In this document: piece by piece, positions 10,256-33,713 of the stretch | Numbering within the stretch: the stretch's first letter is position 1 | Layout of the letters: the number at the start of each line of letters is the position of its first letter | Translations under genes and position numbers: made by a program | NCBI RefSeq assembly: GCF_006345805.1 | Contig: NW_021831696.1 | Location: 1 to 34,582, forward strand | Direction of reading: 5' to 3' | DNA from: Octopus sinensis | Taxonomy: Eukaryota | DNA length: 34,582 nucleotides | Notes under the pieces: generated by a model | Told to the model about the DNA's origin: nothing | Seen by the model: the letters and a program-made list of their open reading frames with translations, nothing else | Databases searched by the model: none

Positions 10256-12495
10256 CATATATACGACGGGCTTCTTTCAGTTTCCGTCTACCAAATCCAC
10301 TCACAAGGCTTTGGTCGGCCCGAGGCTATAGTAGAAGACACTTGCCCAAGGTGCCATGCAGTGGGACTGAACCCGGAACCATGTGGTTCGTAAGCAAGTT
10401 ACTTACCACACAGCCACTCCAACACCTATAATATATATGACGGGCTTCTTTCAGTTTCCGTCTACCAAATCCACTCACAAGGCATTGGTCGGCCTGGGGC
10501 TATAGCAGAAGACACTTGCCCAAGATGCCACGCACTGGGACTGAACCTGCAACCATGTGGTTGGTTAGCAAGCTACTTACCATACAGCCACTCCTGCTTT
10601 GTTAACAAAAAAAAAATTACTTTGACTAAGCAACGTTTTGTGTGTGTTATTTTCGTTGTTGTTGTTGGCCCTACTGGCTACATCATATATATTATAGGTG
10701 TTGGAGTGGCTGTGTGGTAAGTAGCTTGCTTACCAACCACATGGTTCCGGGTTCAGTCCCACTGCGTGGCATCTTGGGCAAGTGTCTTCTACTATAGCCT
10801 GGACATGTTCTCTTGTGATTGATTCAGCCTTGGGACAAACCTTTGTGGTGCCCAATGTGTTGCGGCATCTAGACCTGCCAGAGTCATTGCAGCAGTTGTG
10901 TAGTGTTACCGGGCATTGTACTGAGCTGTGAGGACCGGTTAATCTCTGGATTGATGTTGCCGGACTAGAAGTCATGCTTCCTGTCTATGTGGTGGAGATG
11001 GAAGATCAGTGTATTTTGCGATTGGATTATTCAGCGTCGATGGCTTGTCAGCTGGACTTGTGCTCCATGAAGCTTTCGGTGCAGGGAAGACCAGTCCCCG
11101 TTAAGGTATTAAAGTGCACCACCCTTTAGAACACAGTTTAAGCTATCTTTTCGTGGAAGAAGGTTTTTGTTCCTATAACCTGTGTTAATTCTGTAACCCT
11201 TTAAAATGGAAGATAAGAAACTTCATTTTCGGCACTTGATGCTCTGGGAACCAGACAAAAATTGCTGCAGCTCGGCCGATTTATAGTAGCTTACCTTTCG
11301 ACTTATTTTAGAACATGGTTGAGTCCATAAAATAGGATTTGACTACACCTCCATTTAGAGCACAGTTTAAGCTATCTTTTCGTGAAGAAGGTTTATGTTC
11401 CTATAACCTGTGTTAATTCTGTAACCCTTTAAAATGGAAGATTAGAAAGTTCTTTTTCGGCACTTGATGCTTTGGGAACCAGACAAAAATTGCTGCAGCT
11501 CGGCCGATTTATAGTAGTTTACCTTTCGACTTATTTTAGAACATGGTTGAGTCCATAAAATAGGATTTGACTACACCTCCATTTAGAGCACAGTTTAAGC
11601 TATCTTTTCATGGAAGAAGGTTTATGTTCCTATAACCTGTGTTAATTCTGTAACCCTTTTAAAATGGAAGATAAGAAAAGTTCATTTTCAACACAATGCT
11701 TTGGGAACCAGACAAAAATTGCTGCAGCTTGGCTGTGATGTGTTACCCCACCCTCCATATTCACCAGATATTGCTCCTTCGGACTTCCACTTATTCAAGT
11801 CTCTGCAGAATAGTCTTAATGGTAAAAATTTCAATTCCTTGGATGACGTAAAAAGATACCTTTATGAATTGGTTGCCATGAAACCCCACCAATTCTGGGA
11901 AGAGGGTATTTTCAAGTTAAAGGTAAGATAGAGATGCATTGTGCAACAAAATGGTTCATATTTGGTTGATTAAAAATATAATAGCAAATATTTATTTCCT
12001 TTAAAAATCGGCACGAACTTTCCGGACAACCCAATATATATTTCTTTACTGCCCAGAAGGGGCTAAACATAGAGGGGACAAACAAGGACAGACGAAGGGA
12101 TTGAGTCAATTATATCGACCCAGTGCGAAACTGGTACTTTATTTATCGACCCCGAAAGGATGAAAGGCAAAGTTGACTTCAGCGGAATTTGAACTCAGAA
12201 TGTAACGGCAGACGAAATACCGCTAAGCATTTCGCCAGGCGCGCTAACGTGTTTGCCAGCTCGCCAGAGTAATTATATCTACAGGTGTTAATTATTATAT
12301 AATTATTGTAACATAAATAATAAACAATCCTAGGCGCAGGAGTGGCTGTGTGGTAAGTAGCTTGTTTACCAACCACATGGTTCCGGGTTCAGTCCCACTG
12401 CGTGGCATCTTGGGCAAGTGTCTTCTACTATAGCCTCGGGTCGACCAAAGCCTTGTGAGTGGATTTGGTAGACGGAAACTGAAAGAAGCCCATCG

Positions 12496-12526
<31 letters not shown>

Positions 12527-15147: not shown

Positions 15148-15232
<85 letters not shown>

Positions 15233-18200
15233 TAATAACAATAATAACAATAATAACAATAACAATAATAACAATAATAATAATAATAATAATAATATTA
15301 ATAATAATAATAATAATAATATTAATAATAATAATAACAATAATAATAATAACAATAATAATAATAATAACTATAATAATAATAATAATATAATAATAAT
15401 AATACTAATAATGTGATAGCGAAAGGGGCTGATTGCTACCTAACTCAGATACCAGGAAACCCAAAGGTGGCAGAAATTCAAAAGATAGTGCTCATGGGAA
15501 CTGCTCATATCCTACGCAAAATACTTTCTATGTAATCGCAAGTTTTAAAACAAACATAATTTTCTTATGGTTTCTTAAACATTCTCTAGAACAACACTAA
15601 GTACAAAACCAAATATATGACACCCTAGGCATAACACCAATATGAACTTCCAACCTGTTGTCTCTTGAGGTCTCTGGGTGAGACTTGGAGCCAACTTGTA
15701 CAAATGTAAAGCAAAAGTCAAACATAGAATAATAATAATATATAATAATAATATAATATAATAATAATATAATAATAATAATAATAATGATGATAATAAT
15801 AATAATTAATAATGATAATAATAATTAATAATGATGATAATAATAATTAATAATAATGATAATAATAACAATAATAATAATAATAACAATAATAATAATA
15901 ACAATAATAACAATAACAATAATAATAATAATATTAATAATAATAATAATAATAATCCTTTCTACTGGAGGCACAAGGTCTCAAATTTGTGGGAGGGGAC
16001 TGGTTGATTACATTGACCCTAGTGCATAACTGGTACTGTGGAGTTGGAGTCATGGAGTTGGAGTCGGAGTCATGGAGTCGGAGTCGTAGAGTCGGAGTCG
16101 CGGGGTCGGAGTCTCGGAGTCGTGGAGTCAGAGTCGTGGAGTCGGAGTTGGTAAAATAAACCACCGTCGCTTATTTAAATAGAGGAGTCAGAATCAATGT
16201 TTTTTTTGTTTCGACTCCACAGCCCTGCATAATACAGGTGAAACATTTTGGCCAGATATGGCCAGTTTAAATGCTACATGGTTGATGTTTGAACAGAGAA
16301 CCACATGCTCAATGACTTCTAAAACTACCACTGTATGTAATGCATAATTGTATCTACAGGTCTTAATTATTATTTAATTATTATAACATAAATAATAAAC
16401 AATCCTGTTGATCAAATATTAAATCTGAAAATCAACGTTTTTTTTTTTCATCTTTTACAGGTCCGACGAAAGTGGAAGCTTATGAAATTATCCAAAATGG
16501 TAAATGAATTAAGAAGCCTTTTTCTCCTTTTAAACTGAATATTACTGGCTCAGTGGTTAGAGCGTCGAGCTTACGATCGTGAGGTTGTGAGCTCGAATCC
16601 CGGACCGGGCTGCGTGTTGTGTTCTTGAGCAAGACACTTTATCTCACGTTGCTCCAGTTCACTCAGCTGTAGAAATGAGTTGCGACGTCACAGGTGCCAA
16701 GCTGTATCGGCCCTTGCCTTTCCCTTGGATAACATCGGTGATGTGGAGAGGGGAGGCCGGTATGTATGGGCGACTGCCGGTCTTCCATAAAAAACAACCT
16801 TGCCCAGACTTGTGCCTCAGAGGGTAACTCACTAGGTGCAAACCCATGGTCAGTGTCTGACCGAAGGGGGTCACCATATCACTGTGTTATATAAGGGTGG
16901 ATGGGAGTAACTAGAAAGGGAGAGATGATATAATCAGACATACACCCATGTATGATGATGTCATGCCTCAGTAAACATAAATCTCATTAAATTAAATCTA
17001 ATTAGGTTAAGTGTAATAAGGTGTCTAGTGGAGGCGCAATGGCCCAGTGGTTAGGGCAGCGGACTCGCGGTCATAAGATCGCGGTTTCCATTCCCAGACC
17101 GGGCGTTGTGCGTGTTTATTGAGCGAAAACACCTAAAAGCTCCACGAGGCTCCGGCAAGGGATGGTGGTGATCCCTGCTGTACTCTTTCACCACAACTTT
17201 CTCTCACTCTTACTTCCTGTTTCTGTTGTACCTGTATTTCAAGGGGCCGGCCTTGTCACTCTCTGTGTCACGCTGAATATCCCGGAGAACTACGTTAAGG
17301 GTACACGTGTCTGTGGAGTGCTCAGCCACTTGCACGTTAATTTCACGAGCAGGCTGTTCTGTTGATTCGGATCAACCGGAACCCTCATCGTCGTAACCGA
17401 CGGAATGCTTCCATCCAACAAATAAGGTGTCTAATTTCTTTTGATAATCTCTATTGCACATTTTCCCTTTTAATTTCCATGGCAAAAATATTAATCCTTC
17501 AGCATTCAGATTATTGTCAAATGGAATCCTTATTTATCCACATTGTTTTGGATTAATCATGGATTATCTCATAGCTTTGAGATTTCAATGATGTGATTGT
17601 TTATTGTTAGAATGACATTGCAGAGTAGGTGTGAGAGGCCAGATATGGCCAGTTTAATCCTTTAGCATTCAGATTATCTGTCAACTGTAATCCTTATTTA
17701 TTCACATTGTTTTGGATTAATCATGGATTATCTTGTAGTTTTGAGATTCAATGATGTGATTGTTTATTTTTAGAATGACATTGCAGAGTAGGTGTGAGAG
17801 GCCAGTTTAATCCTTTAGCATTCAGATTACTCTATCAAATGTCATCCTTATTTATCCACATTGTTTTGGATTAATCATGGATTATATCATAGCTTGAGAT
17901 TTCAATGATGTGATTGTTTATTTTTAGAATGACATTGCAGAGTAGGGTGAGAGGCCAGTTTAATCTTTAGCATTCAGATTATCTCCCAAATGTAATCCTT
18001 ATTTATTCACATTGTTTTTTGAATTAATCAGAAATTCAGAAATTATCTCATAGCTTTGTGATGTGACTGTTTCTGTTGAGAATGGCATGGTAGGTACGGT
18101 GGGAGAGGTCAGATGCGGGTATTTTGAACCTAAAGCAAATAGAATATTTGGGCATTGATTTACCAGTTTAAATGCTAAAGGGTTAAAATTGGGTGCAAGA

Positions 18201-19182
18201 TGAAAGCATGGCTTTGGTTAGGAACCATTCCCTAGGCCAACCAAAGCACGCGGAATTCTGTTCTTGATTCGACGGTCATTCGGAATGCTCACAGCAGCCA
18301 TATTCCGACCGCTCTATGTCACGCTGGTGAGACCCATATTGGAGTACGGGATTCAAGCCTCTTCTCCTTATCTCCTCAAAGACATACAGCATCTCGAAAG
18401 AGTCCAGAAGCTGGCTACCGCATGGTCATAGTCTCAAAAATTGTCCTATACGAAGAAAGGTGAGGACGCTTGACCTTTATTCTCTAGAAAAACGCCGCCG
18501 CCGTGGTGATCTCATTCTCGCCCACAACATCACAAGCGGAAAGTGTAACTCTCAAAAGAGCTGTTCTTCACTCCTGCTCCAGAGCATCGGCTGCGGGGTC
18601 ATTCCGAAAACCTCTACCAGCGACGATTTCATCTCAACCGAAGGAGAGGAGCTTTCTCCGTCCGGGTTGCGGATCCGTGGAACAAGCTGCCAGACGAGAT
18701 GGTGAAGATGCCGACGACCGCTTTGTTCAAAGCCTCCCTTGACCTCAAGTGTCCTGAACTCTTTATATGAACACCACCCTGTACTTAACTCCATGTCCCC
18801 CTACATGGCCTTGCTATTGCTTTTGAGCCAATTAACTAACAAAACTAATAACTAAAGCTTTGTGAATGGATTAGGTAGACAAAAGCTGAAATGAGCCTGA
18901 TATGTGTGTGTACATATATATAATAATAATAATTATTATTATTATAATGTTTTATTACATATATACTCTTTACTCTTTACTCTTTTACTTGTTTCAGTCA
19001 TTTGACTGCAGCCATGCTGGAGCACCGCCTTTAGTCGAGCAAATCGACCCCCGGGACTTATTCTTTGTAAGCCCAGTACTTATTCTATCGGTATCTTTTG
19101 CCGAACCGCTAAGTGACGGGGACGTTAAACACACCAGCATCGGTTGTCAAGCAATGCTAGGGGGACAAACACAGACACACAA

Positions 19183-19221
<39 letters not shown>

Positions 19222-22119
19222 TACGACAGGCTTCTTTCAGTTTCTGTCTACCAATCCACTCACAAGGCAATTGGTCGGCCCGGGGCTATAGATGAAGACA
19301 CTTGCCCAAGATGCCACGCAGTGGGACTGAACCCGGAACCATGTGGATGGTAAGCAGACTACTTATCACACTGCCACTCCTGTGTACCGCGACATCCTTT
19401 GTGTTCTGTTTTTTATTTATTTGATATATATATCCTCTCACCCTGACTTTATTGTACCTACCTATATATATATATATATATATATATACCGTAAATCTTG
19501 AGTATAATCCGTATTTTTTCCCAAATTTTAAAGATCAAAATCCCTAGTGCGTAAAATGAAAATTATTTCCTAAGCAATGTCCGAGTTCCTATTTGCTGTC
19601 CGGCAATGTTTATTCAGACGCATTTTGTGATGTCGGGTGCGAAAATACCTTAAGCTAAGCCTGAAAGCAATGAAGTCAAAAGAATCATCCATAACTTGCA
19701 TAAGCAACATTTATTAAACGTTATTACTGTTATTCTTTATTTTCTGCAAACAAAATGCACAAAAAAGCTACACGTTTGCATTATGTTATATATACAATAA
19801 TAATAAAGGACGTTACCGTATACAGTTTTACAAACCAAGGACGTGATATAGACCTCCTTGACTCAAGTTAGAGAAGGGGTGCGTATTATACACAAGGTTT
19901 AGGTTTTTCAGAGGTACAGACCCCTAAAAATCTCCTGCGTATAGTCCTCGAGGGCGGACTATTTGTAGTTGAATGAATCAACCCCAGTGCTTATTTATTT
20001 TAAACCAAATATTTATTTTATCGGTCTCTTTTGCCAAACCACTAAGTTATAGGTATGTAAATACAGCAAAACTGATTGTCAAGCAGTGGTGGGGGAAAAC
20101 ACAGACACACATGCACACACATGCACACAGACACACACATATACGATGGGCTTCTTTCAGTTTCCATCTACGAAATCTCACAAGGCTTTGGTCAGTCTGA
20201 GGCTATAGTAAAAGACGTGGAGGCGCAATGGCCCAGTGGTTAGGGCAGCGGACTCGCGGTCATAGGATCGCGGTTTCGATTCCCAGACCGGGCGTTATGA
20301 GTGTTTATTGAGCGAAAACACCTAAAAGCTCCACGAGCCTCCGGCAGGGGATGGTGGTGATCCCTGCTGTACTCTTTCACCACAACTTTCTCTCACTCTT
20401 ACTTCCTGTTTCTGTTGTACCTGTATTTCAAAGGGCCGGCCTTGTCACTCTCTGTGTCACGCTGAATATCCCCGAGAACTACGTTAAGGGTACACGTGTC
20501 TGTGGAGTGCTCAGCCACTTACACGTTTATTGAGCGAAAACACCTAAAAGCTCCACGAGGCTCCGGCAGGGGATGGTGGTGATCCCTGCTGTACTCTTTC
20601 ACCACAACTTTCTCTCACTCTTACTTCCTGTTTCTGTTGCACCTGTATTTCAAAGGGCCGGCCTTGTCACTCTCTGTGTCACACTGAATATCCCCGAGAA
20701 CTACGTTACGGGTACACGTGTCTGTGGAGTGCTCAGCCACTTACACGTTAATTTCACGAGCAGGCTGTTCCGTTGATTCGGATCAACTGGAACCCTCGTC
20801 GTCATAACCGACAGAGTGCTTCCATCCATTTCAAGGGGCCGGCCTTGTCACTCTCTGTGTCACGCTGAATATCCCCGAAACTACGTTAAGGGTGCACGTG
20901 TCTGTGGAGTGCTCAGCCACTTACACGTTAATTTCACGAGCGGGCTGTTCCGTTGATTCGGATCAACTGGAACCCTCGTCGTCATAACCGACAGAGTGCT
21001 TCCATCCATTTCAAGGGGCCAGCCTTGTCACTCTCTGTGTCACGCTGAATATCCCCGAGAACTATGTTAAGGGTGCACGTGTCTGTGGAGTGCTCAGCCA
21101 CTTACACGTTAATTTCACGAGCGGGCTGTTCCGTTGATTCGGATCAACCGGAACCCTCGTCGTCATAACCGACAGAGTGCTTCCATCCATTTCAAGGGGC
21201 CGGCCTTGTCACTCTCTGTGTCACGCTGAATATCCCCGAGAACTACGTTAAGGGTGCACGTGTCTGTGGAGTGCTCAGCCACTTACACGTTAATTTCACG
21301 AGCGGGCTGTTCCGTTGATTCGGATCAACCGGAACCCTCGTCGTTGTAACCGACAGAGTGCTTCCATAGTAAAAGACACTTGCCCAAGGTGCTGTGCAAT
21401 GTACAATGGTGGAGCATATTTCTCCTCGTGCATTTTGAGTATAGAAAGTGAAGCAGATTCAGAACATTGTCTGAGAATATACACTTTCAAGTCTTCTTCA
21501 AAATTGCAGCCGTTTTTAAACAAAATGTTCTGCAAATTCTGTTGAACTACTATTCTGAGGTTCCAAATTTCGCTGAGGTCAACTTTGCCGTTCATCCTTC
21601 TGGGGTCAATTAATTAAGTACCAGTTGAGTACTGTGGTTGATATAATCGACTGTGCCCCCTCCCTCCATTTCGGGCCTTGTGCCTATAACAGAAAGGTTT
21701 ATCATTATTATTATTATTATCATTAATATTATATTATTATTATTATTATATTATTATTAATTATTATTATTATTTTATTATTATTATTATTATTATTATT
21801 ATATTATTATTATTTTATTATTATTATCATTATTTTATTAATATTATTATTATTATTATGATTATTATTATTATCATTATCATTAATTATTATGAATTAT
21901 TATTATTATTATTATTATTATTAGGATTATTATTATTATCATCATTATTATTATGATTATTATTATTATTATTATTATTATTATCATTAATTATTAGTAT
22001 TATTATTATCATTATTATTATGAATTATATTATTATTATTATTATTATTATTTTATTATTATTATTATTATATTATTATTATTATTATATTATTATTATT
22101 ATCATTAATTATTATGAAA

Positions 22120-22166
<47 letters not shown>

Positions 22167-22235
22167 ATGAATTATTATGAATTATTATTATTATTATTAA
22201 TTATTATCATTAATTATTATCATTAATTATTATGA

Positions 22236-22276
<41 letters not shown>

Positions 22277-22644
22277 CATTAATTATTATGAATTACTGTG
22301 CCTGACGTCAAATCTGCGCCCATTAAACCTGGATCCATGTGGTAGAAAAGTAAACATTTTACCTGGTTTCTTTATTTCAGATATTGGTGATCTCAGTGTA
22401 AGCGCTACTCTACAGGTTGAAATACCAAACATGAAAAGACCGACCGTTTGGAAATACAACAATTATAAATACGAATGTGATCGGACATGCGCTAACAGCG
22501 CCGAATACAGAGTGACGCAGAAGGGAGATATATCGACTCTTTGGATCCGAAACGTAACAAAGGAACGATTGACTTGGAAATTTGAAGAAGACAACCTCAA
22601 CTATGAAAAATTTGATTTGAAGATACACAGTAAGGAAATGATTT

Positions 22645-22683
<39 letters not shown>

Positions 22684-22686
22684 GTG

Positions 22687-22722
<36 letters not shown>

Positions 22723-22736
22723 TTAATAATAATGAT

Positions 22737-22768
<32 letters not shown>

Positions 22769-22797
22769 GATAATGATAATAATTAATAATGATAATG

Positions 22798-22829
<32 letters not shown>

Positions 22830-22950
22830 AATAATTAATAATGATAATAATTAATAATAATAATAATAATGATAATGATGATAATTGATGATAATAATAA
22901 TAATAATAATAATTCATCATAATGATAATAATAATTCATAATAATTAATG

Positions 22951-23008
<58 letters not shown>

Positions 23009-23104
23009 TAATAAAATAATAATAATAATAATAATAATATAATAATGATAATAATAATTAATAATAATGATAATAATAATAATTAATAATTAATAATAAT
23101 GATA

Positions 23105-23153
<49 letters not shown>

Positions 23154-23201
23154 TGATAATAATAATAATAATAATAATAATTATGATAATAATAATTAAT
23201 G

Positions 23202-23248
<47 letters not shown>

Positions 23249-25768
23249 AATGATAAACCTTTCTGTTATAGGCACAAGGCCTGAAATTGAAGGGAGGGGG
23301 CATAGTCGATTATATCAACCACAGTACTCAACTGGTACTTAATTAATTGACCCCAGAAGGATGAACGGTAAAGTTGACCTCAGCGAAATATGGAACTCAG
23401 AATGTAGCGACAGGCAAAATACCGCTAAGCATTTCGTCCAGCATGCTAACAATCCTGATGGTGGTGGTGGTGGTGGCAGTGGAGGTGGCAGCAGCGGTGG
23501 TGGTTTTAGTGATGGTTGTGGCAGTGGAGGTGATGGTTTTAGTGGTGGTGGTGGTGGTGGTGGTTTTGGTAGTGGTGGTGGTGGTGGTTTTAGTGGTGGT
23601 GGTGGTGGTGGTGGTTTTAGAGGTGGTGATGGTTTTAGTGGTGGTGGTGGTGGTGGTGGTTTTAGTGGTGGTAATGGTTTTAGTGGTGGTGGTGGTTTTA
23701 GTGGTGGTGATGGCTTTAGCGGTGGTGGTTTTGGTGGTGGTGGTGGTGGTTTTAGTGGTGGTGATGGTTTTAGTGGTGGTGGTTTTGGTGGTGGTGGTGG
23801 TGGTGGTTTTAGTGGTGGTGGTTTTGGTGGTGGTGGTGATGGCTTTAGTGGTGGTGGTTTTGGTGGTGGTGGTGGTTTTGATGGTGGTGATGGTTTTAGT
23901 GGTGGTGGTGGTGGTGGTGGCTTTAGTGGTGGTGATGGCTTTAGTGGTGGTGGTTTTGGTGGTGGTGATGGTTTTAGTGGTGGTGGTTTTGGTGGTGGTG
24001 ATGGTTTTAGTGGTGGTGGTTTTGGTGGTGGTGATGGTTTTAGTGGTGGTGGTTTTGGTGGTGGTGATGGTTTTAGTGGTGGTAGTTTTGGTGGTGGTGG
24101 TGGTGTTGGTTTTGGTAGTAGTGGTGGTGTTGATGGTTGTGGCAGTGGAGGTGGCGGCGGTGTTGGTAGTTGTGGTGGTGGTTTTGGTGGTGGTGGTGAT
24201 GGTGGTGGTGGTTCAATGCCTTCACTCTAACTGCCACTATATACATATAATTATGCAATCATTGTAACATAAACTGCAATCAATCCTGATGATCAAATGT
24301 AAAATCTGAAAATGAAAAATTTTTGTTTTCTTCTTTTTCAGGTTCAACAAGAACAGAAATATACAAAATTACTCAAAATGGTAAATAGATTGACAACCTT
24401 TTTTCCCTCTTTTATACTAGACCCTATCTTTTCAATTCTGCCTTCTATTTCATTCTCTTAAATCATAGTTTTTAACCATTTTTTAAAACCTTTCTCTGAT
24501 CAGCTCAAGTTAAGTTAAGTTAAGTTAAGTTAATTATTTGGCTCAAAAAGCAAAAAGCAAGACCATGTAGGGGGACATGGAGTTAAGTACAGGGAGGGTG
24601 TTCATGCAAAGAGTTCAGGCCATTTCTGGTCAAGGGAGACTTTGAACCGAGCAGTCGTCGGCATCTTCACTATCTCGTCCGGCAGCTTATTCCACGGATC
24701 CGCAACCCGGACGGAGAAAGCCCCTCTATAGAGAATAATGGTCAAGCGTCTTACCACACAGCCACCCCTATGCCTATATTTATATTTAGAAGGTCATTTG
24801 TTATGGTCATTTACCATCAGTCTTGCATTTATAAAGCGCTTAGCTGTACAGGTTAGTTAAGTTAAGTTGAGTTAATTTTTTGGCTCAAAAAGCAAAAAGC
24901 AAGGCCATGTAGAGGGACATGGAGTTATGTACAGGGAGGGTGTTCATGCAAAGAGTTCAGGCCATTTGTGGTCAAGAGAGACTTTGAACCGAGCGGTCGT
25001 CGGCATCTTCACTATCTCGTCCGGCAGCTTATTCCACGGATCCGCAACCCGGACAGAGAAAGCCCCTCTCTTTCGATTGAGATGAAATCGTTGTAGATAG
25101 AGCTTTATATATATATATATATATTCAATTCAATTCAATTCAATTTTTATTGGCTCAAAAAGCAAAAGCAAGGCCATGTAGGGGGACATGGAGTTATGTA
25201 CAGGAAGAGTGTTCATGCAAAGAGTTCAGGCCATTTCTGGTCCAGAGAGACCTTGAACTGAGCGGTTGTCGGCATCTTCACTATCTCGTCCAGCAGCTTA
25301 TTCCACGGATCCGCAATCCAGACGGAGAAAGCCCCTCTCCTTCGATTGAGATGAAATCGTCACACATAGAGCTTTTCAGAATGACCCCGCAGCCTACGCT
25401 CTGGAACAGGAGTGAAGAACAGCTCTTTTGAGAGGTTACACTTTCTGCTTATGATGTTTCCTTTGGAGATCATAAAAAATAACCATCACCATTTAATGGC
25501 CTCGATGCCAGCGCCGCCTTGACTGGCTTTTGTGCCGGTGGCATGTAAAAAGCACCAATCTGATCATGGCCATTGCCAGCCTCACCTTGCACCTGTGCCG
25601 GTGGCACGTAAAAAGCACCCACTACACTCTCGGAGTGGTTGGCATTAGGAAGGGCATCCAGCTGTAGAAACACTGCCTGATCAGACTGGAGTGTGGTGCA
25701 GCCTCCTGGCTTCCCAGATCCCCGTCGACCCGTCCAACCCATGCTAGCATGGAGAACGGACGTTAAAC

Positions 25769-25826
<58 letters not shown>

Positions 25827-26308
25827 CTGGCATCAGTTGGATAATTATTAAGGATCCATCTAATTCTGTTTTTAATTAATTGGGCTTTAACTCTCTCTGT
25901 AACTTTCTTGACCTGTTCCACTGGGTTGAAGGCATCTCCTTTACACTTGTAACATCTGACTACAATGCTGCTACACCAGTTGTTAATGTGACACCTTTCT
26001 GTTCAGCTTGGTTTACAGTGACGAGGTTGTATCTTACTTGGCAAAATCCTAGTAAACAAAAGGCCCATTTATATGGTGTCCTTTATTTCCAGTTCACTTG
26101 GTAAAACATGTCTAGGCACCTTGTTACTCAATAGACTGACATATTAGGTGCAGAAGTGGCTGTGTGGTAAGTAGCTTGCTAACCAACCTCATGGTTCTGG
26201 GTTCAGTCCCACTGCGTGGCATCTTGGGCAAGTGTCTTCTGCTATAGCCCCGGGCCAACCAATGCCTTGTGAGTGGATTTGGTAGATGGAAACTGAAAGA
26301 AGCCTGTC

Positions 26309-26343
<35 letters not shown>

Positions 26344-27331
26344 GGCATAGGAGTGGCTGTGTGGTAAGTAGCTTGCTAACCAACCTCATGGTTCCGGGTT
26401 CAGTCCCACTGTGTGGCATCTTGGGCAAGTGTCTTCTGCTATAGCCTCGGGCCGACCAAAGCCTTGTAAGTGGATTTGGTAGACGGAAACTGAAAGAAGC
26501 CTGTCGTATATATGTGTATATATATATATATATGTATGTGTGTGTTTGTGTGTCTGTGTTTGTCCCCCTAGCATTGCTTGACAACCGATGCTGGTGTGTT
26601 TATGTCCCCGTTACTTAGCGGTTTGGCAAAGGAGACCGATAGAATAAGTACTGGGCTTACAAAAGAATAAGTCCCGGGGTTGAGTTGCTCGATTAAAGGC
26701 GGTGCTCCAGCATGGCCGCAGTCAAAATGACTGAAACAAGTAAAAGAGTACAAAGAGTATTAGGACCAGAAGAGTGTCCAGTTATGCACAAAGAAAACTC
26801 TGCTCCCAAGCAAGGAAAAGTAGGTGTTAAAATGGCAATGATGATGAAATCTTTCATATGGAAAACCAATCAATAATATTGATTTGTCTTTTTATTTCAG
26901 GACCAGTTGCATTAGGGGGCAGTGTTACACTTCATATTGAAGTAGCCGGGATGAAAAGAATTGTTGGCTGGAAAAACGACTATGGAAGATATGAATGTGA
27001 TATGACTTGTTATAATCGTAGTAACCATGAAGTTACACAAAATGGTAACTCATCGAAGCTTTTGATCCGAAATGTCACCAAACAAGATTTGACTTGGTAT
27101 TTTTGTGACTTGAATCTCTGCTCTGGAAATTATTCCTTAAAGATAAAAGGTAAGTGAATTACTTTTGCTAATAATAATAATAATAATAACGATAATGATA
27201 ATAATAATAATAATGATAATGATGATAATAATGATAATGATAATGATGATAATAATAATAATAATGATAATAATAATAATATAATAATAATAATAATGAT
27301 GATAATAATAATGATAATGATAATAATAATG

Positions 27332-27379
<48 letters not shown>

Positions 27380-27413
27380 TAATAATAATATAATAATGAT
27401 GATGATGATGATG

Positions 27414-27445
<32 letters not shown>

Positions 27446-27464
27446 GATAATGATAATAATAATA

Positions 27465-27555
<91 letters not shown>

Positions 27556-29237
27556 TAATAATAATAATAATAATAATGATGATAATGATGATAATAATAA
27601 TGATGATGATAATAATGATAATCATCATCATCATCATCGTCGTTTAACGTCCGTTCTCCATGCTAGCATGGGTTGGACGGTTCGACCGGGGTTCTGGGAA
27701 GCCAGAAGGCTGCACCAGGCTCCAGTCTAATTTGGCAATGTTTCTACAGCTGGATGCCCTTCCTAACGCCAACCACTCCGTGAGTGTAGTGGGTGCTTTT
27801 TACGTGCCACCTGCACAGGTGCCAGGCGGGGCTGGCAACGGCCACGGTCAGATTGGTGTATTTTATGTCCCACTGGCACGGAAGCCAGTCGAGGCGGTGC
27901 TGGCATCGGCCACGAGTCGGATAGTGCTTTTTACGTACCACCAGACCAGGGATCCTGGCTGGTTCAATTCGATTTCGATTTCGCTTGCCCCAACATGTCT
28001 TCACAAGCAAAGGGGGTTGGCAAGGGTGCCTGTCGTACGGTCGCATTGGAGTATTTTACGTGCCACGGCCACGAGTCGGATAGTGCTTTACGTACCACCA
28101 GACCAGGGATCCTGGCTGGTTCAATTCGATTTCGATTTCGCTTGCCCCAAATGTCTTCACAAGCAAAGGGGGTTGGCATGGGTGCCTGTCGTACGGTCGC
28201 ATTGGAGTATTTTACGTGCCACGGCCCCGAGTCGGATAGTGCTTTTTACGTACCACCAGGCCAGGGATCCTGGCTGGTTCAATTCGGTTTCGATTTCGCT
28301 TGCCCCAACATGTCTTCGCAAGCATGGGGGGTTGGGATGGGTGTCTGTCGTCGGATGAGGTTCTATATCGACTTCGCTTGCCTCAACCGGTCTTTGTGTC
28401 CAAGGGAGGAAAGGCATTCATAAGTGGGCTGGGCTCACTTGTCCTGCCTGGTCTTCTCACGTACAGAATATTTCCAAAGGTCTCGGTCTCTGGTCATTTC
28501 CTCAGTGAGGCCTAAAGTTCGAAGGTCGTGCTTCACCACCTCGTCCCAGGTTTTCCTGGGTCTACCTCTTCCACGGGTTCCCTCAACTGCTAGGGATTGG
28601 CACTTTCTCACACACCTATCTTCATCCATTCTCGCCACATGACCATACCAGCGCAATCGTCTCTCTTGCACACCACAACTGATGCTTCTTAGGTACAACA
28701 TTTCTCTCAAGGTGCTAACGCTCTGTCGAGTATGTACACTGACATTACACATCCATCGGAGCATACTGGCTTCATTCCTCACGAGCTTACGCATGTCCTC
28801 AGCAGTCACAGCCCATGTTTCGCTACCATGTAGCATGGCTGTTCGTACACACGCATCATACAGTCTGCCTTTTACTCTGAGCGAGAGGCCTAGTCACCAG
28901 CAGCAGAGGTAAGAGCTCCCTAAACTTTGCCCAGGCTATTCTATTCTAGCAGTTACACTTTCAGCGCACCACCCCCATACTGACTTGGTCACCTAGATAA
29001 CGGAAGCTATCAACTACTTCTAGTTTTTCCCCCTGGAAAGTGACGGAAGTTGTTTTCTGCAGATTTTCGGAGGTTAATGCTCCCGAGCATCTGCCACATA
29101 CAAAAACTATCTTCCCAGTTAGCCTACTTTGACTTGGCTGCCCTCTTATGTGTCCATAGCTTACACTGGGTACATCTTATAGAGTTTCTACCTACACCTT
29201 TTACAGATCGAGCAGGGCCATAGAAAAGGTGTAGGTA

Positions 29238-29268
<31 letters not shown>

Positions 29269-30006
29269 TAACAATAATAATGATATAATATAATAATAAT
29301 TATATAATAATAATAATATAATTAATAATAATAATAATAATGATATTAATAATATTTAATGGTTGAATGATATTCCGACAGCAAGCCTCTCTTTGTCAAG
29401 TTCAAAGTAAAAGTGATAGAAATTCATATCTAAAGTATGAAAAAGCTCAAGCAGTGTCCATATGTTGATGGAATGACAGCATGAGTCTTTAAGTTCCGAT
29501 TTTATAATTGGTGAAGAGAAAAAGACAGTAAAATAGAGAGTAAAAAAGAGGAAAGAAAAAAGGAAAAGGTAAAAGGAAAATGATATTTAACCAAATAGTT
29601 TTGTGTAAATTTAATGACATTCTCCTATTATTTTATTCAATCCTCCAGGGCATGTTGTTAATTATTTCTCCTCGTGCATTTTGAGTATAGAAAGTGAAGC
29701 AGATTCTGAACATTGTCTGAGGGTATGCACTTTCAAGTCTTCTTCAAAATTGCAGCCGTTTTTAAACAAAATGTTCTGCAAATTCTGTTGAACTACTATT
29801 CTGAGTTCCAAATTTCGCTGAGGTCAACTTTGCCGTTCATCTTTCTGGGGTCAATGAATTAAGTACCAGTTGAGTACTGTGTTTGATATAATCGACTGTG
29901 CCCCCTCCCTCCAATTTCAGGCCTTGTGCCTATAACAGAAAGGTTTATCATTATTATTATTATTATCATTAATATTATATTATTATTATTATTTTATTAT
30001 TATTAT

Positions 30007-30055
<49 letters not shown>

Positions 30056-30194
30056 TATTTTTATTATTATTTTATTATATAATTATTATCATTATTATAT
30101 TATTATTATCATCATTAATTATTATGAATTATATTATTATTATTATTATATTATCATGAATATTAGAATTATTATTATTATTATATTATTATTA

Positions 30195-30227
<33 letters not shown>

Positions 30228-33200
30228 TATTATCATTAATTATTATGAATTATTATTATTATTATTAGTTTATTATTATTATTATCATTAAATTATGAAT
30301 TATTATTATATATTATTATATTATTATTATTATTATTATTATTATCATTAATTATTATGAATTATTATTATTATTATTGTTATTATCATTATTATTATTA
30401 TTATTATTATCATTAATTATTATGAATTATTATTATTATTATTATATTATTATTATTATTATTATTATTATTATCATTAATTATTTGAATTACTGTGCCT
30501 GACGTCAAATCTGCGCCCATTAAACCTTTTGTTTAATTGTTCTGTTGGACAACCAACATAAATCAAGCATGTTTCATACATTCTGCTGCATACACCAAAT
30601 GGGAATCTCTCCATGTCCCACTTATATTATATTCGTAACACTAGCTAAATTAAGTTAAGTTAATTTTTGGGCTCAAAAAGCAAAAAGCAAGGTCATGTAG
30701 GGGGACATGGAGTTATGTACAGGGAGGGTGTTCATGCAAAGAGTTCAGGCCATTTCTGGTCAAGAGAGACTTTGAACCGAGCGGTCATCAGCATCTTCAC
30801 TATCTCGTCCGGCAGCTTATGCCATGGATCCGCAACCCGGACGGAGAAAGCCCCTCTCCTTTGATTGAGATGAAATCGTTGCAGATAGAGCTTTATATAA
30901 ATATATATTCTATTCAATTCAATTTTTATTGGCTCAATAAGCAAAAGCAAGGCCATGTAAGGGGACATGGAGTTATGTACAGGGAGGGTGTTCATGCAAA
31001 GAGTTCAGACCATTTCTGGTCAAGAGAGACTTTGAACTGAGCGGTCGTCGGCATCTTCACTATCTCGTCCGGCAGCTTATTCCACGGATCCGCAACCCGG
31101 ACGGAGAAAGCCCCTCTCCTTCGATTGAGATGAAATCGTCGTAGATAGAGCTTTTCGGAGTGACCCCGCAGCCGACGATCTGAATGATAACTAAGTTATT
31201 TTACTAATTCTTTGTTATATTTAAAGTAATTGAAAGAAACAACAGAGCATCTCAACAGAAATATGGTAACGAAAGGGTTAAATTATATAATAGAGAAACA
31301 ATTCTTAACCCTTTTGATACCAACCCGGCTGAAACCACCTTTGGCTCTGTGGTACAAATGTCTTGTTTTCATAAGTTCTGAATTAAAATCTTCCACCAAA
31401 CCTTAGTCACAATTTATGTTCCTAACACTAGCTTAATGATAACCAAGTTATTTTTCTAAATTCTTTGTTATATTTAAAGTAATTGAAAGAAACACAGAGC
31501 ATCTCAACAGAAATATGGCAACGAAAGGGTTAAAATATATAATAGAGAAACAATTCTTAACCCTTTCATTACCAACCCGGCTGAAACCACCTTTGGCTCT
31601 GTGGTACAAATGTCTTGTTTTCATAAGTTCTGAATTAAAATCTTCCACCAAACCTTAGTCACATTTTATGTTCCTAAAACTAGCTTAATGGTAACTAAGT
31701 TATTTTACTAAATTCTTTGTTATATTTATAATTAATTGAAAGAAACACAGAGCATCTCAACAGAAATATGGTAACAAAAGGGTTAAAATATATAATAGAG
31801 AAACAATTCTTAACCCTTTCATTACCAACCCGGCTGAAACCACCTCTGGCTCTGAGTACAAATGTCTTGTTTTCATAAGTTCTGAATTAAAATCTTCCAC
31901 CAAACCTTAGTCACAATTTATGTTCCTAACACTAGCTTAATGATAACTAAGTTATTTTACTAAATTCTTTGTTATATTTAAAGTAATTGAAAGAAACACA
32001 GAGCATCTCAACAGAAATATGGTAACAAAAGGGTTAAATTATATAATAGAGAAACAATTCTTAACCCTTTTGATACCAACCCGGCTGAAACCACCTCTGG
32101 CTCTGAGTACAAATGTCTTGTTTTCATAAGTTCTGAATTAAAATCTTCCACCAAACCTTAGTCACAATTTATGTTCCTAACACTAGCTGAATGATAACCA
32201 AGTTATTTTACTAAATTCTTTGTTATATTTAAAGTAATTGAAAGAAACACAGAGCGTCTCAAAATAAATACAGTAACGAAAGGGTTAATAAAGAAATCTG
32301 TCTTTTATTAAAAAAACGAAAGGTACATGTTTCATTGTTTATCTTTTGCAGATCAAACAACTAATGGACCAAGACCCCGCATACCAGTCTATGCTGTTGT
32401 TATCCTTTCCCTACTTGGATTTGTAGTCATCCTTCTCATAATCTGCTTCTTCATATACAGATACAACCCTTGCAACATGAGGGAAACTTTTGTCACCTAC
32501 TACACATCTTGTATAGAACACCGGAGACATAGGAATGTTATATATAGACCACCAAAGACATAAGAATGTTATATATATATATATAGTGGAGGCGCAATGG
32601 CCCAGTGGTTAGGGCAGCGGACTCGCGGTCGTAGGATCGCGGTTTCGATTCCCAGACCGGGCGTTGTGAGTGTTTATTGAGCGAAAACACCTAAAAGCTC
32701 CACGAGGCTCCGGCAGGGGATGGTGGTGATCCCTGCTGTACTCTTTCACCACAAACTTTCTCTCACTCTTACTTCCTGTTTCTGTTGTACCTGTATTTCA
32801 AGGGGCCAGCCTTGTCACTCTCTGTGTCACGCTGAATATCCCCGAGAACTACGTTAAGGGTACACGTGTCTGTGGAGTGCTCAGCCACTTGCAGGTTAAT
32901 TCCACGAGCAAGCTGTTCCGTTGATCGTATCAGCTGGGACCCTCATCATCGTAACCGATGGATTACAGAGAAAAAAATGAGCGATAACATCTAAAAGCTC
33001 CACGAGGCTCCGGCAGGGGATGGTGGTGATCCCTGCTGTACTCTTTCACCACAAACTTCTCTCACTCTTACTTCCTGTTTCTGTTGTACCTGTATTTCAA
33101 GGGGCCAGCCTTGTCACTCTCTGTGTCACGCTGAATATCCCCGAGAACTACGTTAAGGTACACGTGTCTGTGGAGTGCTCAGCCACTTGCAGGTTAATTC

Positions 33201-33713
33201 CACGAGCAAGCTGTTCCGTTGATCGTATCAGCTGGGACCCTCATCATCGTAACCGATGGATTACAGAGAAAAAATTGAGCGATAACATCTAAAAGCTCCA
33301 CGAGGCTCCGGCAGGGGATGGTGGTGATCCCTGCTGTACTCTTTCACCACAAACTTTCTCTCACTCTTACTTCCTGTTTCTGTTGTACCTGTATTTCAAG
33401 GGGCCGGCCTTGTCACTCTCTGTGTCACGCTGAATATCCCCGAGAACTACGTTAAGGGTACACGTGTCTGTGGAGTGCTCAGCCACTGACATGTTAATTT
33501 CACAAGCAGGCTGTTCCGTTGATTCGGATCAACCGGAACCCTCGTCGTCGTAACCGACAGTGTGCTTCCAATACAATCCATATATAGAACACCGGAGACA
33601 TAAAAATGTTATATTTTGTGATTTCTTCAGTGGCAGCTTGTGTAGAGGCACTGAGGAACTGCAGCACCACCCCGGCCATCTCCACTCGATATTATCAAAA
33701 ACATTCAATATAA
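8858..33713 (+). CDS. Spliced gene (9 coding exons, 381 aa): type I membrane protein with signal peptide, three tandem Ig-like domains, TM helix and short cytoplasmic tail
   Basis: join(8858-8897,13082-13120,14881-15129,16461-16499,22381-22629,24342-24380,26901-27149,32352-32510,33631-33713) = 1146 nt, open from ATG to TAA. All introns are GT-AG and phase 1. Protein begins MDILQFCVFALCFCLMKARLYKIFQTENVVLNG. Seven N-x-S/T sequons lie in the predicted ectodomain. The last junction is the least certain. Confidence 0.85.
9000..9832 (+). mobile_element. Two adjacent RTE-type 3' UTR fragments
   Basis: Repeated gtgccggtggcacgtaaaaagcacc units. The first copy ends in (GAT)n at ~9450 and the second is truncated at ~9830. 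Confidence 0.7.
10013..10597 (-). mobile_element. SINE family A with duplicated head
   Basis: One tail and two heads (10262-10420 and 10438-10597). Confidence 0.85.
10812..11118 (+). pseudogene. Gypsy-like LTR retrotransposon aspartic protease fragment
   Basis: Translates LVIDSALGQTFVVPNVL...*GPVNLWIDVAGLEVMLPVYVVEMEDQCILRLDY...QLDLCSMKLSVQG. This fits retropepsin hallmarks: hydrophobic-D-S-(G>A) active site and IL(G>R)LD motif. One internal stop. Confidence 0.7.
11119..12037 (+). mobile_element. Internally deleted mariner transposon with triplicated ~229-bp 5' segment
   Basis: MEDKKLHFRHLML N-terminus is fused to QKLLQLG.DVLPHPPYSPDIAPSDFHLFKSLQNSL (mariner YSPDLAPSD motif). The right end ...cggacaacccaata|TA is present; a left TIR was not found. 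Confidence 0.88.
12045..12267 (-). mobile_element. SINE family B
   Basis: Near-identical to 1-222. Confidence 0.8.
12332..13021 (+). mobile_element. SINE family A with one head and three tandem tails; AATCCT target-site duplication
   Basis: AATCCT at 12326-12331 and 13022-13027. The paralogous empty site is at 16401-16406. Confidence 0.92.
13082..13120 (+). CDS. 39-nt micro-exon M1 ((C)LMKARLYKIFQT)
   Basis: cgtcttttacag|...ACTG|gtaaat. Its length, phase and flanking intron sequence are homologous to 16461-16499 and 24342-24380. Confidence 0.85.
13205..14242 (-). mobile_element. Tandem array of 5-6 SINE family A heads
   Basis: ~185-bp unit (cgggcttctttcagtttcc...ccacacagccactc) separated by (AT)n. 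Confidence 0.88.
14243..14782 (+). mobile_element. Tandem trimer of SINE family B body
   Basis: gccg(t/c)tacgttc(a/t)gag recurs at ~14246, ~14430 and ~14611. Confidence 0.85.
14881..15129 (+). CDS. 249-nt exon, Ig-like domain 1 (ENVVLNGNTTLHIEVP...KFDLKAN)
   Basis: tttctttatttcag| acceptor and G|gtaagg donor. Open frame with VTW, YECDNVC and SLWIRKVT motifs. 41/83 residues are identical to domain 2 by my count. Confidence 0.92.
15145..15957. repeat. (AAT)n tracts following Ig-like exon 1
   Basis: Two tracts (15145-15415 and 15727-15957). The intervening sequence is not assigned. Confidence 0.95.
16036..16228. mobile_element. (GGAGTC)n-containing MITE-like element
   Basis: The left end ctgtggagttggagtc and the right end cgactccacagccctg are inverted, with internal GGAGTC repeats. 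Confidence 0.55.
16461..16499 (+). CDS. 39-nt micro-exon M2 ((G)PTKVEAYEIIQN)
   Basis: catcttttacag|...AATG|gtaaat; paralogue of M1 and M3. Confidence 0.85.
16543..16875 (+). mobile_element. tRNA-derived SINE, family D
   Basis: A box TGGCTCAGTGG and B box GCTCGAATCCC, followed by ttgagcaagacacttt and a non-tRNA body. Confidence 0.75.
17028..17415 (+). mobile_element. tRNA-derived SINE, family C (possibly tRNA-Arg related)
   Basis: A box TGGCCCAGTGG, TCG at the anticodon-like position and a degenerate B box. Homologous copies at 20217 and 32586. Confidence 0.8.
17491..18186. mobile_element. piggyBac-like MITE with four tandem ~155-bp 5' units
   Basis: Units start ttaatcctttagcattcag at ~17491, 17654, 17807 and 17960. 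The element ends aatgctaaaggg|TTAA. Confidence 0.65.
18190..18840 (+). mobile_element. CR1-clade LINE 3' fragment (ORF2 C-terminus and 3' UTR)
   Basis: KARGILFLIRRSF...LYVTLVRPILEYGIQASSPYLLKDIQHLERVQKLAT...LDLYSLEKRRRRGDLI is a typical CR1 ORF2 C-terminus, with frameshifts and a (TAAC)-type tail. Confidence 0.88.
18965..19383 (-). mobile_element. SINE family A, full length
   Basis: Direct similarity to the other copies. Confidence 0.88.
19486..19960. mobile_element. Probable non-autonomous Tc1/mariner-superfamily (pogo/Tc2-like) remnant
   Basis: Starts TA|CCGTAAATCTTGAGTATAATCCG and has the complementary gcgtattatacacaagg motif near the end. No complete right TIR. Confidence 0.35.
20217..21365 (+). 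mobile_element. SINE family C with internal tandem amplifications; 12-bp TSD
   Basis: ATAGTAAAAGAC at 20205-20216 and 21366-21377. It is inserted in an older minus-strand family A SINE. Confidence 0.92.
21418..22330 (+). repeat. Duplicated block A: ~130-nt unassigned segment, SINE B 3' part, (TTA)n and unique end
   Basis: Collinear with 29665-30527. The SINE and TTA part is the reverse complement of 22645-23405. Confidence 0.88.
22381..22629 (+). CDS. 249-nt exon, Ig-like domain 2 (DIGDLSVSATLQVEIP...KFDLKIH)
   Basis: tttctttatttcag| acceptor and A|gtaagg donor. Gap-free alignment to domains 1 and 3. Confidence 0.92.
22645..23457 (-). repeat. Block B: (AAT)n tract plus minus-strand SINE B remnant
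   Basis: Shares diagnostic variants (tatatcaaccacagtactc, aattaattgaccccagaagg, gatgaacgg) with blocks A and C that the 1-222 copy lacks. Confidence 0.88.
23458..24212. repeat. (GGT)n-based minisatellite (GGTGGTGATGGTTTTAGT-like units)
   Basis: Visible directly; it produces the Gly-rich and Val-rich ORFs. Confidence 0.9.
24342..24380 (+). CDS. 39-nt micro-exon M3 ((S)STRTEIYKITQN)
   Basis: ttctttttcag|...AATG|gtaaat; paralogue of M1 and M2. Confidence 0.85.
24505..25467 (-). mobile_element. Three truncated CR1 3' fragments
   Basis: Reverse complements of the 3' part of 18190-18840, at ~24505-24735, 24853-25110 and 25126-25467. Confidence 0.82.
25490..25826 (+). mobile_element. RTE-type 3' fragment with long (GAT)n tail
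   Basis: Shares the 3' end catgctagcatggagaacggacgttaaacgatgatg. Confidence 0.78.
26147..26760 (+). mobile_element. SINE family A with two heads
   Basis: Heads at ~26147 and ~26344, with a single tail. Confidence 0.86.
26901..27149 (+). CDS. 249-nt exon, Ig-like domain 3 (GPVALGGSVTLHIEVA...NYSLKIK)
   Basis: tctttttatttcag| acceptor and G|gtaagt donor. GGSVTL, VGW, LLIRNVTKQD and WYFC resemble the B, C, E and F strands of a V-type Ig fold. Confidence 0.92.
27170..27620. repeat. (AAT/GAT)n tract following Ig-like exon 3
   Basis: Visible directly. It continues at 29240-29350 on the far side of the RTE insertion. Confidence 0.95.
27620..29239 (-). mobile_element. 5'-truncated RTE-clade LINE
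   Basis: Minus-strand LEVVDSFRYLG...LYDACVRTAMLHGSETW...RRLRWYGHVARM...RGRGRPRKTW is an RTE ORF C-terminus. The 3' UTR has a ~159-bp triplication and ends in (GAT)n. Confidence 0.92.
29665..30527 (+). repeat. Duplicated block C (second copy of block A)
   Basis: Runs atttctcctcgtgc ... ttactgtgcctgacgtcaaatctgcgcccattaaacct. It is not followed by an Ig-like exon. Confidence 0.88.
30650..31183 (-). mobile_element. Two tandem CR1 3' fragments
   Basis: ggctcaa...gcaaggccatgtagggggacatgg occurs at ~30669 and ~30930. Confidence 0.82.
31184..32288. mobile_element. Tandem array (~4.4 copies, ~252-bp period) of a piggyBac-like MITE plus spacer
   Basis: TTAA|CCCTTT...AAAGGG|TTAA units start at 31305, 31557, 31810 and 32061, separated by atataatagagaaacaattc. 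Confidence 0.8.
32352..32510 (+). CDS. Transmembrane exon (DQTTNGPRPR-IPVYAVVILSLLGFVVILLIICFFIY-RYNPCNMRETFVTYYTS)
   Basis: atcttttgcag| acceptor, in frame at phase 1. A 26-residue hydrophobic segment is followed by Arg. The 3' end is uncertain: weak donor T|gtatag at 32511, otherwise read-through to TAA at 32561-32563. Confidence 0.85.
32586..33570 (+). mobile_element. SINE family C with three ~300-bp internal repeats
   Basis: One tRNA-like head, then aaagctccacgaggctccggcagggg at ~32693, 32993 and 33293. Confidence 0.88.
33631..33713 (+). CDS. Probable terminal exon, cytoplasmic tail ((L)AACVEALRNCSTTPAISTRYYQKHSI*)
   Basis: ttttgtgatttcttcag| acceptor at 33630. The phase-1 frame is open to TAA at 33711-33713. 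It is a short unique-sequence island between repeats. Confidence 0.55.

Follow-up and report, generated by a model that had tools for sequence, protein, structure and literature searches.

The 34,582-nt stretch of Octopus sinensis DNA analysed here (contig NW_021831696.1, positions 1 to 34,582; the window) contains LOC115228031, a gene on the + strand that encodes an immunoglobulin (Ig)-like receptor with three tandem Ig modules and a transmembrane (TM) exon. Three large repeat blocks in its introns, A, B and C, had been proposed in an initial annotation to fold into competing stems, A with B or B with C, that would loop out either the second Ig exon or the third Ig module. The two isoforms of the gene, X1 and X2, correspond to XP_029654562.1 and XP_029654563.1. 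Pfam recognises an I-set immunoglobulin domain in the product, and a protein search with the spliced exons returned matches in Octopus proteins only. The exons are laid out as follows:

From 8858, + strand: signal-peptide exon
13082-13120, + strand: mini-exon M1
14881-15129, + strand: Ig1 exon, 249 nt, phase 1-1, placed by splice sites and translation, identical to XP_029654562.1
16461-16499, + strand: mini-exon M2, 39 nt
22381-22629, + strand: Ig2 exon, 249 nt, phase 1-1
24342-24380, + strand: mini-exon M3, 39 nt
26901-27149, + strand: Ig3 exon, 249 nt
32352-32563, + strand: transmembrane/cytoplasmic exon, ending at the stop codon

From Ig1 to the TM exon, joining at the phase-1 boundaries gives a single open frame, so that loss of Ig2, or of M3 together with Ig3, would leave the frame intact. 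At the DNA level the three modules are ~72-78% identical, and their similarity runs from ~50 nt 5' of each Ig exon into the downstream intron. The repeat blocks lie between and beside these modules and contain pieces of short interspersed nuclear elements (SINEs) next to long trinucleotide tracts:

21417-22330, + strand: block A, one copy of a ~0.9-kb unit (the A/C unit), with left flank 21417-21546, SINE 3' piece 21547-21698, TTA tract 21699-22289 and right flank 22290-22330
22645-23470, + strand: block B (B2), with AAT tract 22645-23256 followed by an antisense SINE-like repeat, 23257-23470
29663-30527, + strand: block C, second copy of the A/C unit, oriented as A, with left flank 29663-29792, SINE piece 29793-29944, TTA tract 29945-30485 and right flank 30487-30527
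15146-16037, + strand: B1, with AAT tract 15146-15420 and 15711-15957, then an antisense SINE 3'-end remnant, 15957-16037
27169-27622, + strand: B3, an AAT tract with no SINE body remaining in O. sinensis

Self-BLAST aligned A (21417-22330) directly with C (29663-30527) at 88.7% identity over 918 columns with 40 gap openings. In inverted orientation, A (21547-22289) aligned with B (23407-22663) at 87.8% over 765 columns with 35 gap openings, and B (22698-23407) with C (29793-30485) at 85.9% over 721 columns; the E-value was effectively 0 in all three cases. The gap between A and B holds Ig2 with its two splice sites and nothing else exonic, and the gap between B and C holds M3 and Ig3. Block A ends 50 nt upstream of Ig2, and block C sits between Ig3 and the TM exon. 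The orientations and enclosed exons are thus as first described. The blocks had been described as a SINE piece plus a tract, and both components are present, but A and C also have non-SINE flanks in common: a left one of 130 nt with 97% identity and a right one of 41 nt with 100%. The part of the B SINE that is common to A and C is confined to 23257-23407.

Most of each arm is low-complexity sequence. Tandem Repeats Finder identified period-3 arrays at 21699-22289, 22645-23256 and 29945-30485 (81-83% matches), and ~590-610 nt of each ~750-nt arm, about four-fifths, is imperfect TTA/AAT microsatellite with 81-86% matches. Over the tract alone the identity between A and B is ~86%, which is not above that between A and the B3 tract (27169-27622). 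The specific part is the SINE-like piece of ~150 nt, where B matches A or C at 94.7-94.8%, compared with 74-83% for other copies in the window.

The three-block inventory also proved too short, as it had passed over the AAT tracts after Ig1 and Ig3, which are likewise able to pair with A and C. An AAT tract starts about 15-20 nt past the donor of all three Ig exons (B1, B2 and B3), that is, 17 nt past the Ig1 donor and 20 nt past the Ig3 donor, giving two TTA blocks (A, C) and three AAT blocks (B1, B2, B3) in total. The SINE remnant of B1 is 74% identical to B, and in O. bimaculoides a short tract and a SINE piece are still present after Ig3, as seen in the read-through of isoform P0003. Two further features of the tracts were observed. 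A unique insert of ~300 nt (15421-15710) divides the AAT tract behind Ig1, and an additional AAT-rich tract of ~130 nt lies at 29238-29372, ~290 nt 5' of C, where it is a potential partner of the TTA tracts.

To date the blocks and find their source, we compared the window with five related loci, in a search that covered ~200 kb of non-redundant octopus DNA:

L001: O. sinensis LOC115231260, scaffold VCDQ01005279.1, 85 kb, exons 98-100% identical to those of the window gene
L002: LOC115227428, a paralogue
L003: the O. vulgaris orthologue, chromosome-level assembly, 68 kb taken
L004: the O. bimaculoides orthologue
L005: LOC115230628, a paralogue

L001 and L003 match the window in the order of A, B and C and in their flanks. 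Both A and C are lacking in L002, L004 and L005, as is any TTA tract, and the M2-Ig2 intron of O. bimaculoides is only ~150 nt long. In that species B occupies the same site after Ig2, where it is an almost complete antisense SINE whose tail measures ~45 nt. B is therefore an old resident and the long tracts are lineage-specific expansions, the tails having grown to 0.45-1.1 kb in the O. sinensis / O. vulgaris lineage.

We then polarised the substitutions in B against the O. bimaculoides orthologue and four further module-linked copies, which served as outgroups. There are 19 derived sites in O. sinensis B; 17 of them are shared by all six A/C copies, one by some and one by none, which supports a local origin of A and C. 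A 17-mer interruption of the tract, TCATTAATTATTATGAA, occurs several times in A and C and, reversed, in the tract after Ig2, including that of the paralogue L002; it had zero occurrences in B1, B3, L004 and L005. Locus-specific derived states and tract interruptions in common with a resident source, in copies that the outgroup and paralogous loci lack, are as expected of local duplication or gene conversion. Identity between B and its O. bimaculoides orthologue is 82% over the stretch shared with A and C and 85% over the rest of B, equal to the 85% seen for the exon. Copying in the other direction, with B overwritten from A/C, was rejected, as the shared part of B is not more diverged from the orthologue; this even divergence points to B as the source and not the recipient.

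The flanks of the A/C unit carry additional information. When reversed, the 41-nt right flank aligns best with Ig2-type exon ends (GATTTGA...CACAGTAA), and from this sequence match it probably represents ~20 nt of the Ig2 end and donor, inverted. We also considered the right flank as the antisense relic of a whole Ig pseudo-exon, which was rejected because the nucleotide alignment is marginal (shuffle p ~0.03-0.1) and protein-level searches were negative. A interrupts another SINE copy; copies of that SINE ahead of Ig1 and of the paralogous Ig2 have an intact 3' end. For the sequence around C, no counterpart was found in the paralogues or in O. bimaculoides. The 17 shared derived states, the module-2 17-mer and the Ig2-type match of the right flank indicate copying from B2, and the sequence comparison supports A and C as two copies of a young ~0.9-kb unit built around a partial, inverted copy of the end of Ig2 and of B2. 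Candidate mechanisms are template switching, an RNA intermediate and conversion of an older element. The idea that the blocks descend from a single aged local copy is supported as to the local copying and can be made more precise: B is old, and A and C are young.

We next asked how the blocks might pair in the pre-mRNA. The following pairings are predicted:

A:B2, -757 kcal/mol, 699 pairs (RNAduplex)
B2:C, -662 kcal/mol (RNAduplex)
B1:A, -422 kcal/mol (RNAduplex)
A:B3, -400 kcal/mol (RNAduplex)
B3:C, -351 kcal/mol (RNAduplex)
B1:C, -342 kcal/mol (RNAduplex)
SINE pair 18971-19384 with 26346-26759, -734 kcal/mol, bracketing Ig2 and M3
SINE pair 12337-12739 with 18971-19384, -708 kcal/mol, bracketing Ig1 and M2
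SINE pair 25503-25825 with 27585-27908, -551 kcal/mol, bracketing Ig3 alone

Both Ig2 and M3+Ig3 are flanked by reverse-complementary intronic arms with a stable predicted duplex. The ~750-bp stem envisaged for A and B is borne out to the extent that a very long, stable duplex is predicted; however, with ~80% of the arm being microsatellite, only ~150 nt of it is specific, and the SINE pieces of the blocks alone reach -269 to -274 kcal/mol. GC-richer SINE pairs half as long attain -490 to -734 kcal/mol and are comparable to the tract pairings. The pre-mRNA contains 49 inverted pairs of at least 100 nt, A:B and B:C included, which bracket many exon combinations.

Minimum free energy (MFE) folding of 21500-23450 kept the A:B stem, with 699 A:B pairs, and extended it past the tract. 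The right flank of A is complementary to the end of Ig2 in two places:

22293-22314, + strand: complement of the Ig2 end and donor, in which UUACUGUG (22293-22300) complements CACA/GUAA (22626-22633; the slash marks the exon-intron boundary)
22308-22314, within the same segment: second complement, UCAAAUC, which complements GAUUUGA (22614-22620)

In the MFE structure 22295-22300 is paired with 22626-22631, the Ig2 donor from -4 to +2, and 22308-22314 with 22614-22620 within the Ig2 exon. With arms ~300-370 nt apart, the effective A:B loop is ~300 nt and contains the Ig2 acceptor and most of the exon. This predicted burial of the donor, which the initial annotation had not mentioned, could lower Ig2 use and provides the strongest mechanistic argument for such an effect.

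The order of transcription is B1, A, B2, B3, C, with A and B2 finished 6.4 kb before C, which gives kinetic priority to A:B2, or even to B1:A. As A and C have identical right flanks, B2:C pairing would cover the Ig2 donor too, and the 22629->32352 junction proposed for skipping M3 and Ig3 would lose the donor that it requires. In addition, microsatellite can pair in any register with any partner, so that many states are expected rather than two.

Comparison among the assemblies gives no sign of constraint on the pairing. The B tract measures ~610, 1100 and 500 nt and the C tract ~540, 970 and 1230 nt in the window, L001 and L003, respectively, which is about a twofold spread across three assemblies. 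The layout is missing one species away, and the few O. vulgaris substitutions in B have no compensating change in A or C. Neither conservation nor covariation of the pairing elements was found among the compared loci, A and C being absent from O. bimaculoides, L002 and L005.

Overall, we consider it probable that the blocks arose recently and neutrally, as SINE tails expanded and sequence was locally duplicated in inverted orientation within a triplicated exon module, and that they are not an evolved switch. An antisense SINE-like repeat with an (ATT)n tail was copied along with the Ig module, as B1, B2 and B3, and is older than the O. bimaculoides split. In the pre-mRNA, A:B2 would be the favoured pairing, being the longest, having the closest arms and being made minutes before C. 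The ~300-nt loop of its hairpin would contain the Ig2 acceptor and the greater part of the exon, with the donor from -4 to +2 in the stem. If A:B2 forms, some in-frame Ig2 skipping or back-splicing may follow, together with heavy ADAR editing that would melt the AU-rich stem. We judge any effect of A:B2 on splicing to be minor and unregulated; from the predicted fold a structural effect on Ig2 is plausible, though on the unlikely side.

Several observations weigh against a purely neutral origin or against details of the proposed copying. The A:B hairpin is unusually favourable, with its 699 predicted pairs, short loop and masked donor, and in mammals the influence of inverted repeats rises with proximity to splice sites (PMC13019944). 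Neither the three blocks nor the donor-complementary flank has been disrupted in O. vulgaris or in either O. sinensis scaffold, although these are only ~1-2% diverged, so that retention of the blocks says little. As to the copying, the 130-nt left flank of the A/C unit lacks an explained source, and the exon-derived right flank rests on a short match (shuffle p ~0.03-0.06). Neither tblastn with the three Ig peptides nor a hidden Markov model built from 48 family modules and run against the six-frame translation gave a match at 22290-22462 or 30477-30614.

The alternative that survives best is a constitutive effect in cis without a switch. Here, A:B2 would form co-transcriptionally and mask the Ig2 donor, leading to less Ig2 inclusion or to a 249-nt Ig2 circle, and it would be hyper-edited by ADAR, with C and the other tracts as bystanders. 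We regard this as possible but on the unlikely side. The predicted stability of A:B2, the pairing of 22626-22631 with 22295-22300 and the proximity of the two arms, both 6.4 kb ahead of C, speak for it. Moreover, that inverted repeats around an exon promote skipping, as the initial annotation had assumed, is established: inverted Alu pairs are enriched at skipped exons, more so near splice sites, they have been caught as duplexes in cells, and deletion of one arm lowers skipping in minigenes (PMC13019944). Octopus editing is likewise concentrated in hairpins, mostly those of introns and also those of 3' untranslated regions (PMC9699675).

However, Ig2 has splice sites that look strong, editing would destabilise the ~80% of the stem made up of A-U pairs only, and B1, which is transcribed ahead of A, could occupy A first. 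Circular RNAs (circRNAs) are also rare in octopus; just 296 passed filters in the single systematic octopus study, at low expression, and its authors ascribe this scarcity to ADAR melting intronic duplexes and describe alternative splicing rates as unremarkable (PMC9699675). LOC115228031 is not named in the literature found, nor in the supplements of that study (PMC9699675). Among the annotated products of LOC115228031, LOC115231260 and the O. vulgaris orthologue, variation is at the N-terminus, apart from one alternative C-terminus in O. vulgaris. No Ig2 skip and no M3+Ig3 skip is present among the annotated isoforms of these three loci, all of which carry Ig1, Ig2 and Ig3, as judged from annotation and not at read level.

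A regulated choice between A:B and B:C, in which Ig2 skipping alternates with M3+Ig3 skipping to tune the number of Ig domains, is very improbable in our view. The geometry is as described, both skips preserve the frame, and both stems are stable (-757 and -662 kcal/mol). Exon duplication that copies intronic arms is also a proposed route to competing structures (PMC6071210), and among annotated paralogue isoforms there are differences of a single Ig exon or mini-exon. Yet the mutually exclusive two-state model is not supported: there are five tracts in place of three, and many further inverted pairs, the order of transcription strongly favours A:B, and B:C would mask the very donor used by the 22629->32352 junction. 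A and C are missing in O. bimaculoides and the paralogues, the tract lengths are unstable, and LOC115228031 has no such annotated isoforms. Certain paralogue isoforms do lack one Ig exon or mini-exon, but the models that differ in Ig exons, LOC115225115 and LOC115225116, span ~380 kb and are unreliable. In LOC115230628, a single case, one isoform skips M2 with no TTA tract, and in the paralogue LOC115227428, which is without A and C, the set of isoforms is of the same kind.

A related reading is that the five tracts and the donor-masking flank form a newborn docking/selector-like system that sets three, two or one Ig domains in an octopus-specific receptor; we give it little credence. That such a system arose in the O. 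sinensis / O. vulgaris lineage through inverted duplication of a splice-site-containing intron block, possibly modulated by ADAR, is equally hard to credit. As in the docking/selector clusters of Dscam1 exon 6, 14-3-3 zeta and srp, the octopus Ig exons have been duplicated in tandem along with a neighbouring intronic element, and B1, B2 and B3 are all complementary to common partners, A and C, with one pairing per arm at a time. In contrast to these clusters, all annotated mRNAs of the gene carry three Ig exons, so inclusion is not one-of-N. The arms are hundreds of nucleotides of repeat instead of short conserved boxes, they show no conservation or covariation, and the pairing would hide an exon rather than free one from repression. 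The locus thus has docking/selector topology but lacks two defining features, one-of-N inclusion and conservation. Competing docking/selector structures have been suggested to originate when an exon and its intronic stem arm undergo tandem duplication together (Ivanov and Pervouchine 2018, PMC6071210).

Independent insertion of A, B and C as members of a young genome-wide SINE subfamily, with the shared variants marking subfamily membership, is scarcely tenable. Our search covered the ~200 kb of octopus DNA given above, and a possible imperfect 8-9-nt direct repeat (TTGTTAAT / TTGTTTAAT) at the two ends of C resembles a short target-site duplication. Nevertheless, B is old, with an orthologous counterpart in O. 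bimaculoides to which it is 80% identical, and 17 of the changes that arose at the B locus after the O. bimaculoides split are also carried by A and C. A and C also have 171 nt of non-SINE flank in common (130 + 41 nt), and they share the 17-mer interruption specific to module 2. Finally, at all loci compared, the B-type 3' end is found only beside Ig exons of this gene family. An assembly artefact, with collapsed or mis-joined low-complexity sequence, can practically be dismissed: long microsatellites are hard to assemble and tract lengths do vary among assemblies, but two O. sinensis scaffolds and the chromosome-level assembly of O. vulgaris agree in order, orientation and unique flanks.

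The closest known counterparts are inverted-repeat-flanked exons, such as those between inverted Alu pairs, which promote skipping and back-splicing, including 'alternative circularisation' when pairs compete. Reverse-complementary copies lie on both sides of the exon and near its splice sites, the predicted duplex is very stable and there are several rival partners (PMC13019944). Unlike Alu arms, the octopus arm consists mostly of a trinucleotide microsatellite with A and U only, whose pairing is not tied to one register or to one of the three tracts. The octopus arms stem from local inverted duplication and not from independent retroposition, and the predicted stem enters the exon and covers the donor.

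Sequestration of a splice donor in a local stem is known from the tau exon 10 stem-loop and from SMN2 TSL2. Similarly, the Ig2 donor from -4 to +2 is base-paired in the predicted structure, whereas here the masking strand lies ~330 nt upstream and the predicted helix is the apical part of a ~700-bp hairpin. The locus also resembles ADAR hyper-editing substrates in its predicted long intramolecular intronic double-stranded RNA; in this case reads from the microsatellite would be unmappable, and the two ~150-nt SINE pieces alone are informative.

If the A:B hairpin does alter Ig2 inclusion, the locus would be a datable natural experiment, as the inverted copy is missing in O. bimaculoides and the sister paralogues and its source can be identified, donor complement included. 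It would then capture the proposed start of splicing control by competing structures (PMC6071210), and, should the docking/selector reading be true, a live lophotrochozoan example of the duplication route to competing RNA structures. More generally, SINE tails expanded to microsatellites, together with local duplications, readily make very long intronic inverted repeats in a repeat-rich cephalopod genome. Such repeats are therefore not to be read as regulatory without RNA evidence.

Several observations concern the comparison loci. The same gene is annotated as two O. sinensis loci, in the window and in L001, and as a single copy in the 68 kb of O. vulgaris, so the window may be an alternative haplotype of L001 rather than a distinct gene. 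The two annotated O. bimaculoides isoforms, P0003 and P0027 (L004, 18861 onward), continue beyond the Ig3 donor through the short AAT tract (NNNNNN), end in the antisense SINE piece (...SFQFWHKVSNF...) and have no TM exon; either this is a soluble form whose C-terminus derives from the SINE, or the gene model is incomplete. Directly downstream in L004, on the minus strand (22907-28290), lies a paralogous gene in tail-to-tail inverted orientation with Ig3-, Ig2- and Ig1-like exons.

Other repeats neighbour the blocks and exons of the window, in the whole of which a scan with Rfam gave no family above threshold. A tandem array with a 181-bp unit (20647-21367; 4 copies, 97% matches) stops 50 nt before A, and a 252-bp array (31183-32288; 4.4 copies, 95% matches) stops ~60 nt before the TM exon; kindred units of 180-222 bp recur at ~17030-17470 and 32590-33620. 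The acceptors of Ig1 and Ig2 lie ~20 nt past the 3' end of an abundant SINE (...gaaccatgtggttggaaagcaaacttcttacc; window 14800-14880 and 22331-22380). The same arrangement is seen at L002 20630-20710 and L005 37990-38066, so that in several family members the polypyrimidine tract and acceptor adjoin SINE-derived sequence.

Three open reading frames (ORFs) look, by eye, like intronic transposon debris. That at 11701-11931 (+ strand) resembles the C-terminus of a mariner-type transposase (...PYSPDIAPSDFHLF...), and those at 18264-18431 (+ strand) and 28435-28836 (- strand) resemble fragments of a reverse transcriptase of long interspersed nuclear elements. Directly 3' of B, a G-rich minisatellite (23459-24212) consists of (GGT)n with TTT/AGT interruptions, its best periods being 15-51. 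The region is intronic, with a GC skew of +0.73 and an open frame on the + strand (23361-24230) that would give poly-Gly/Phe/Ser, and beside the B arm it could form G-quadruplexes in the pre-mRNA.

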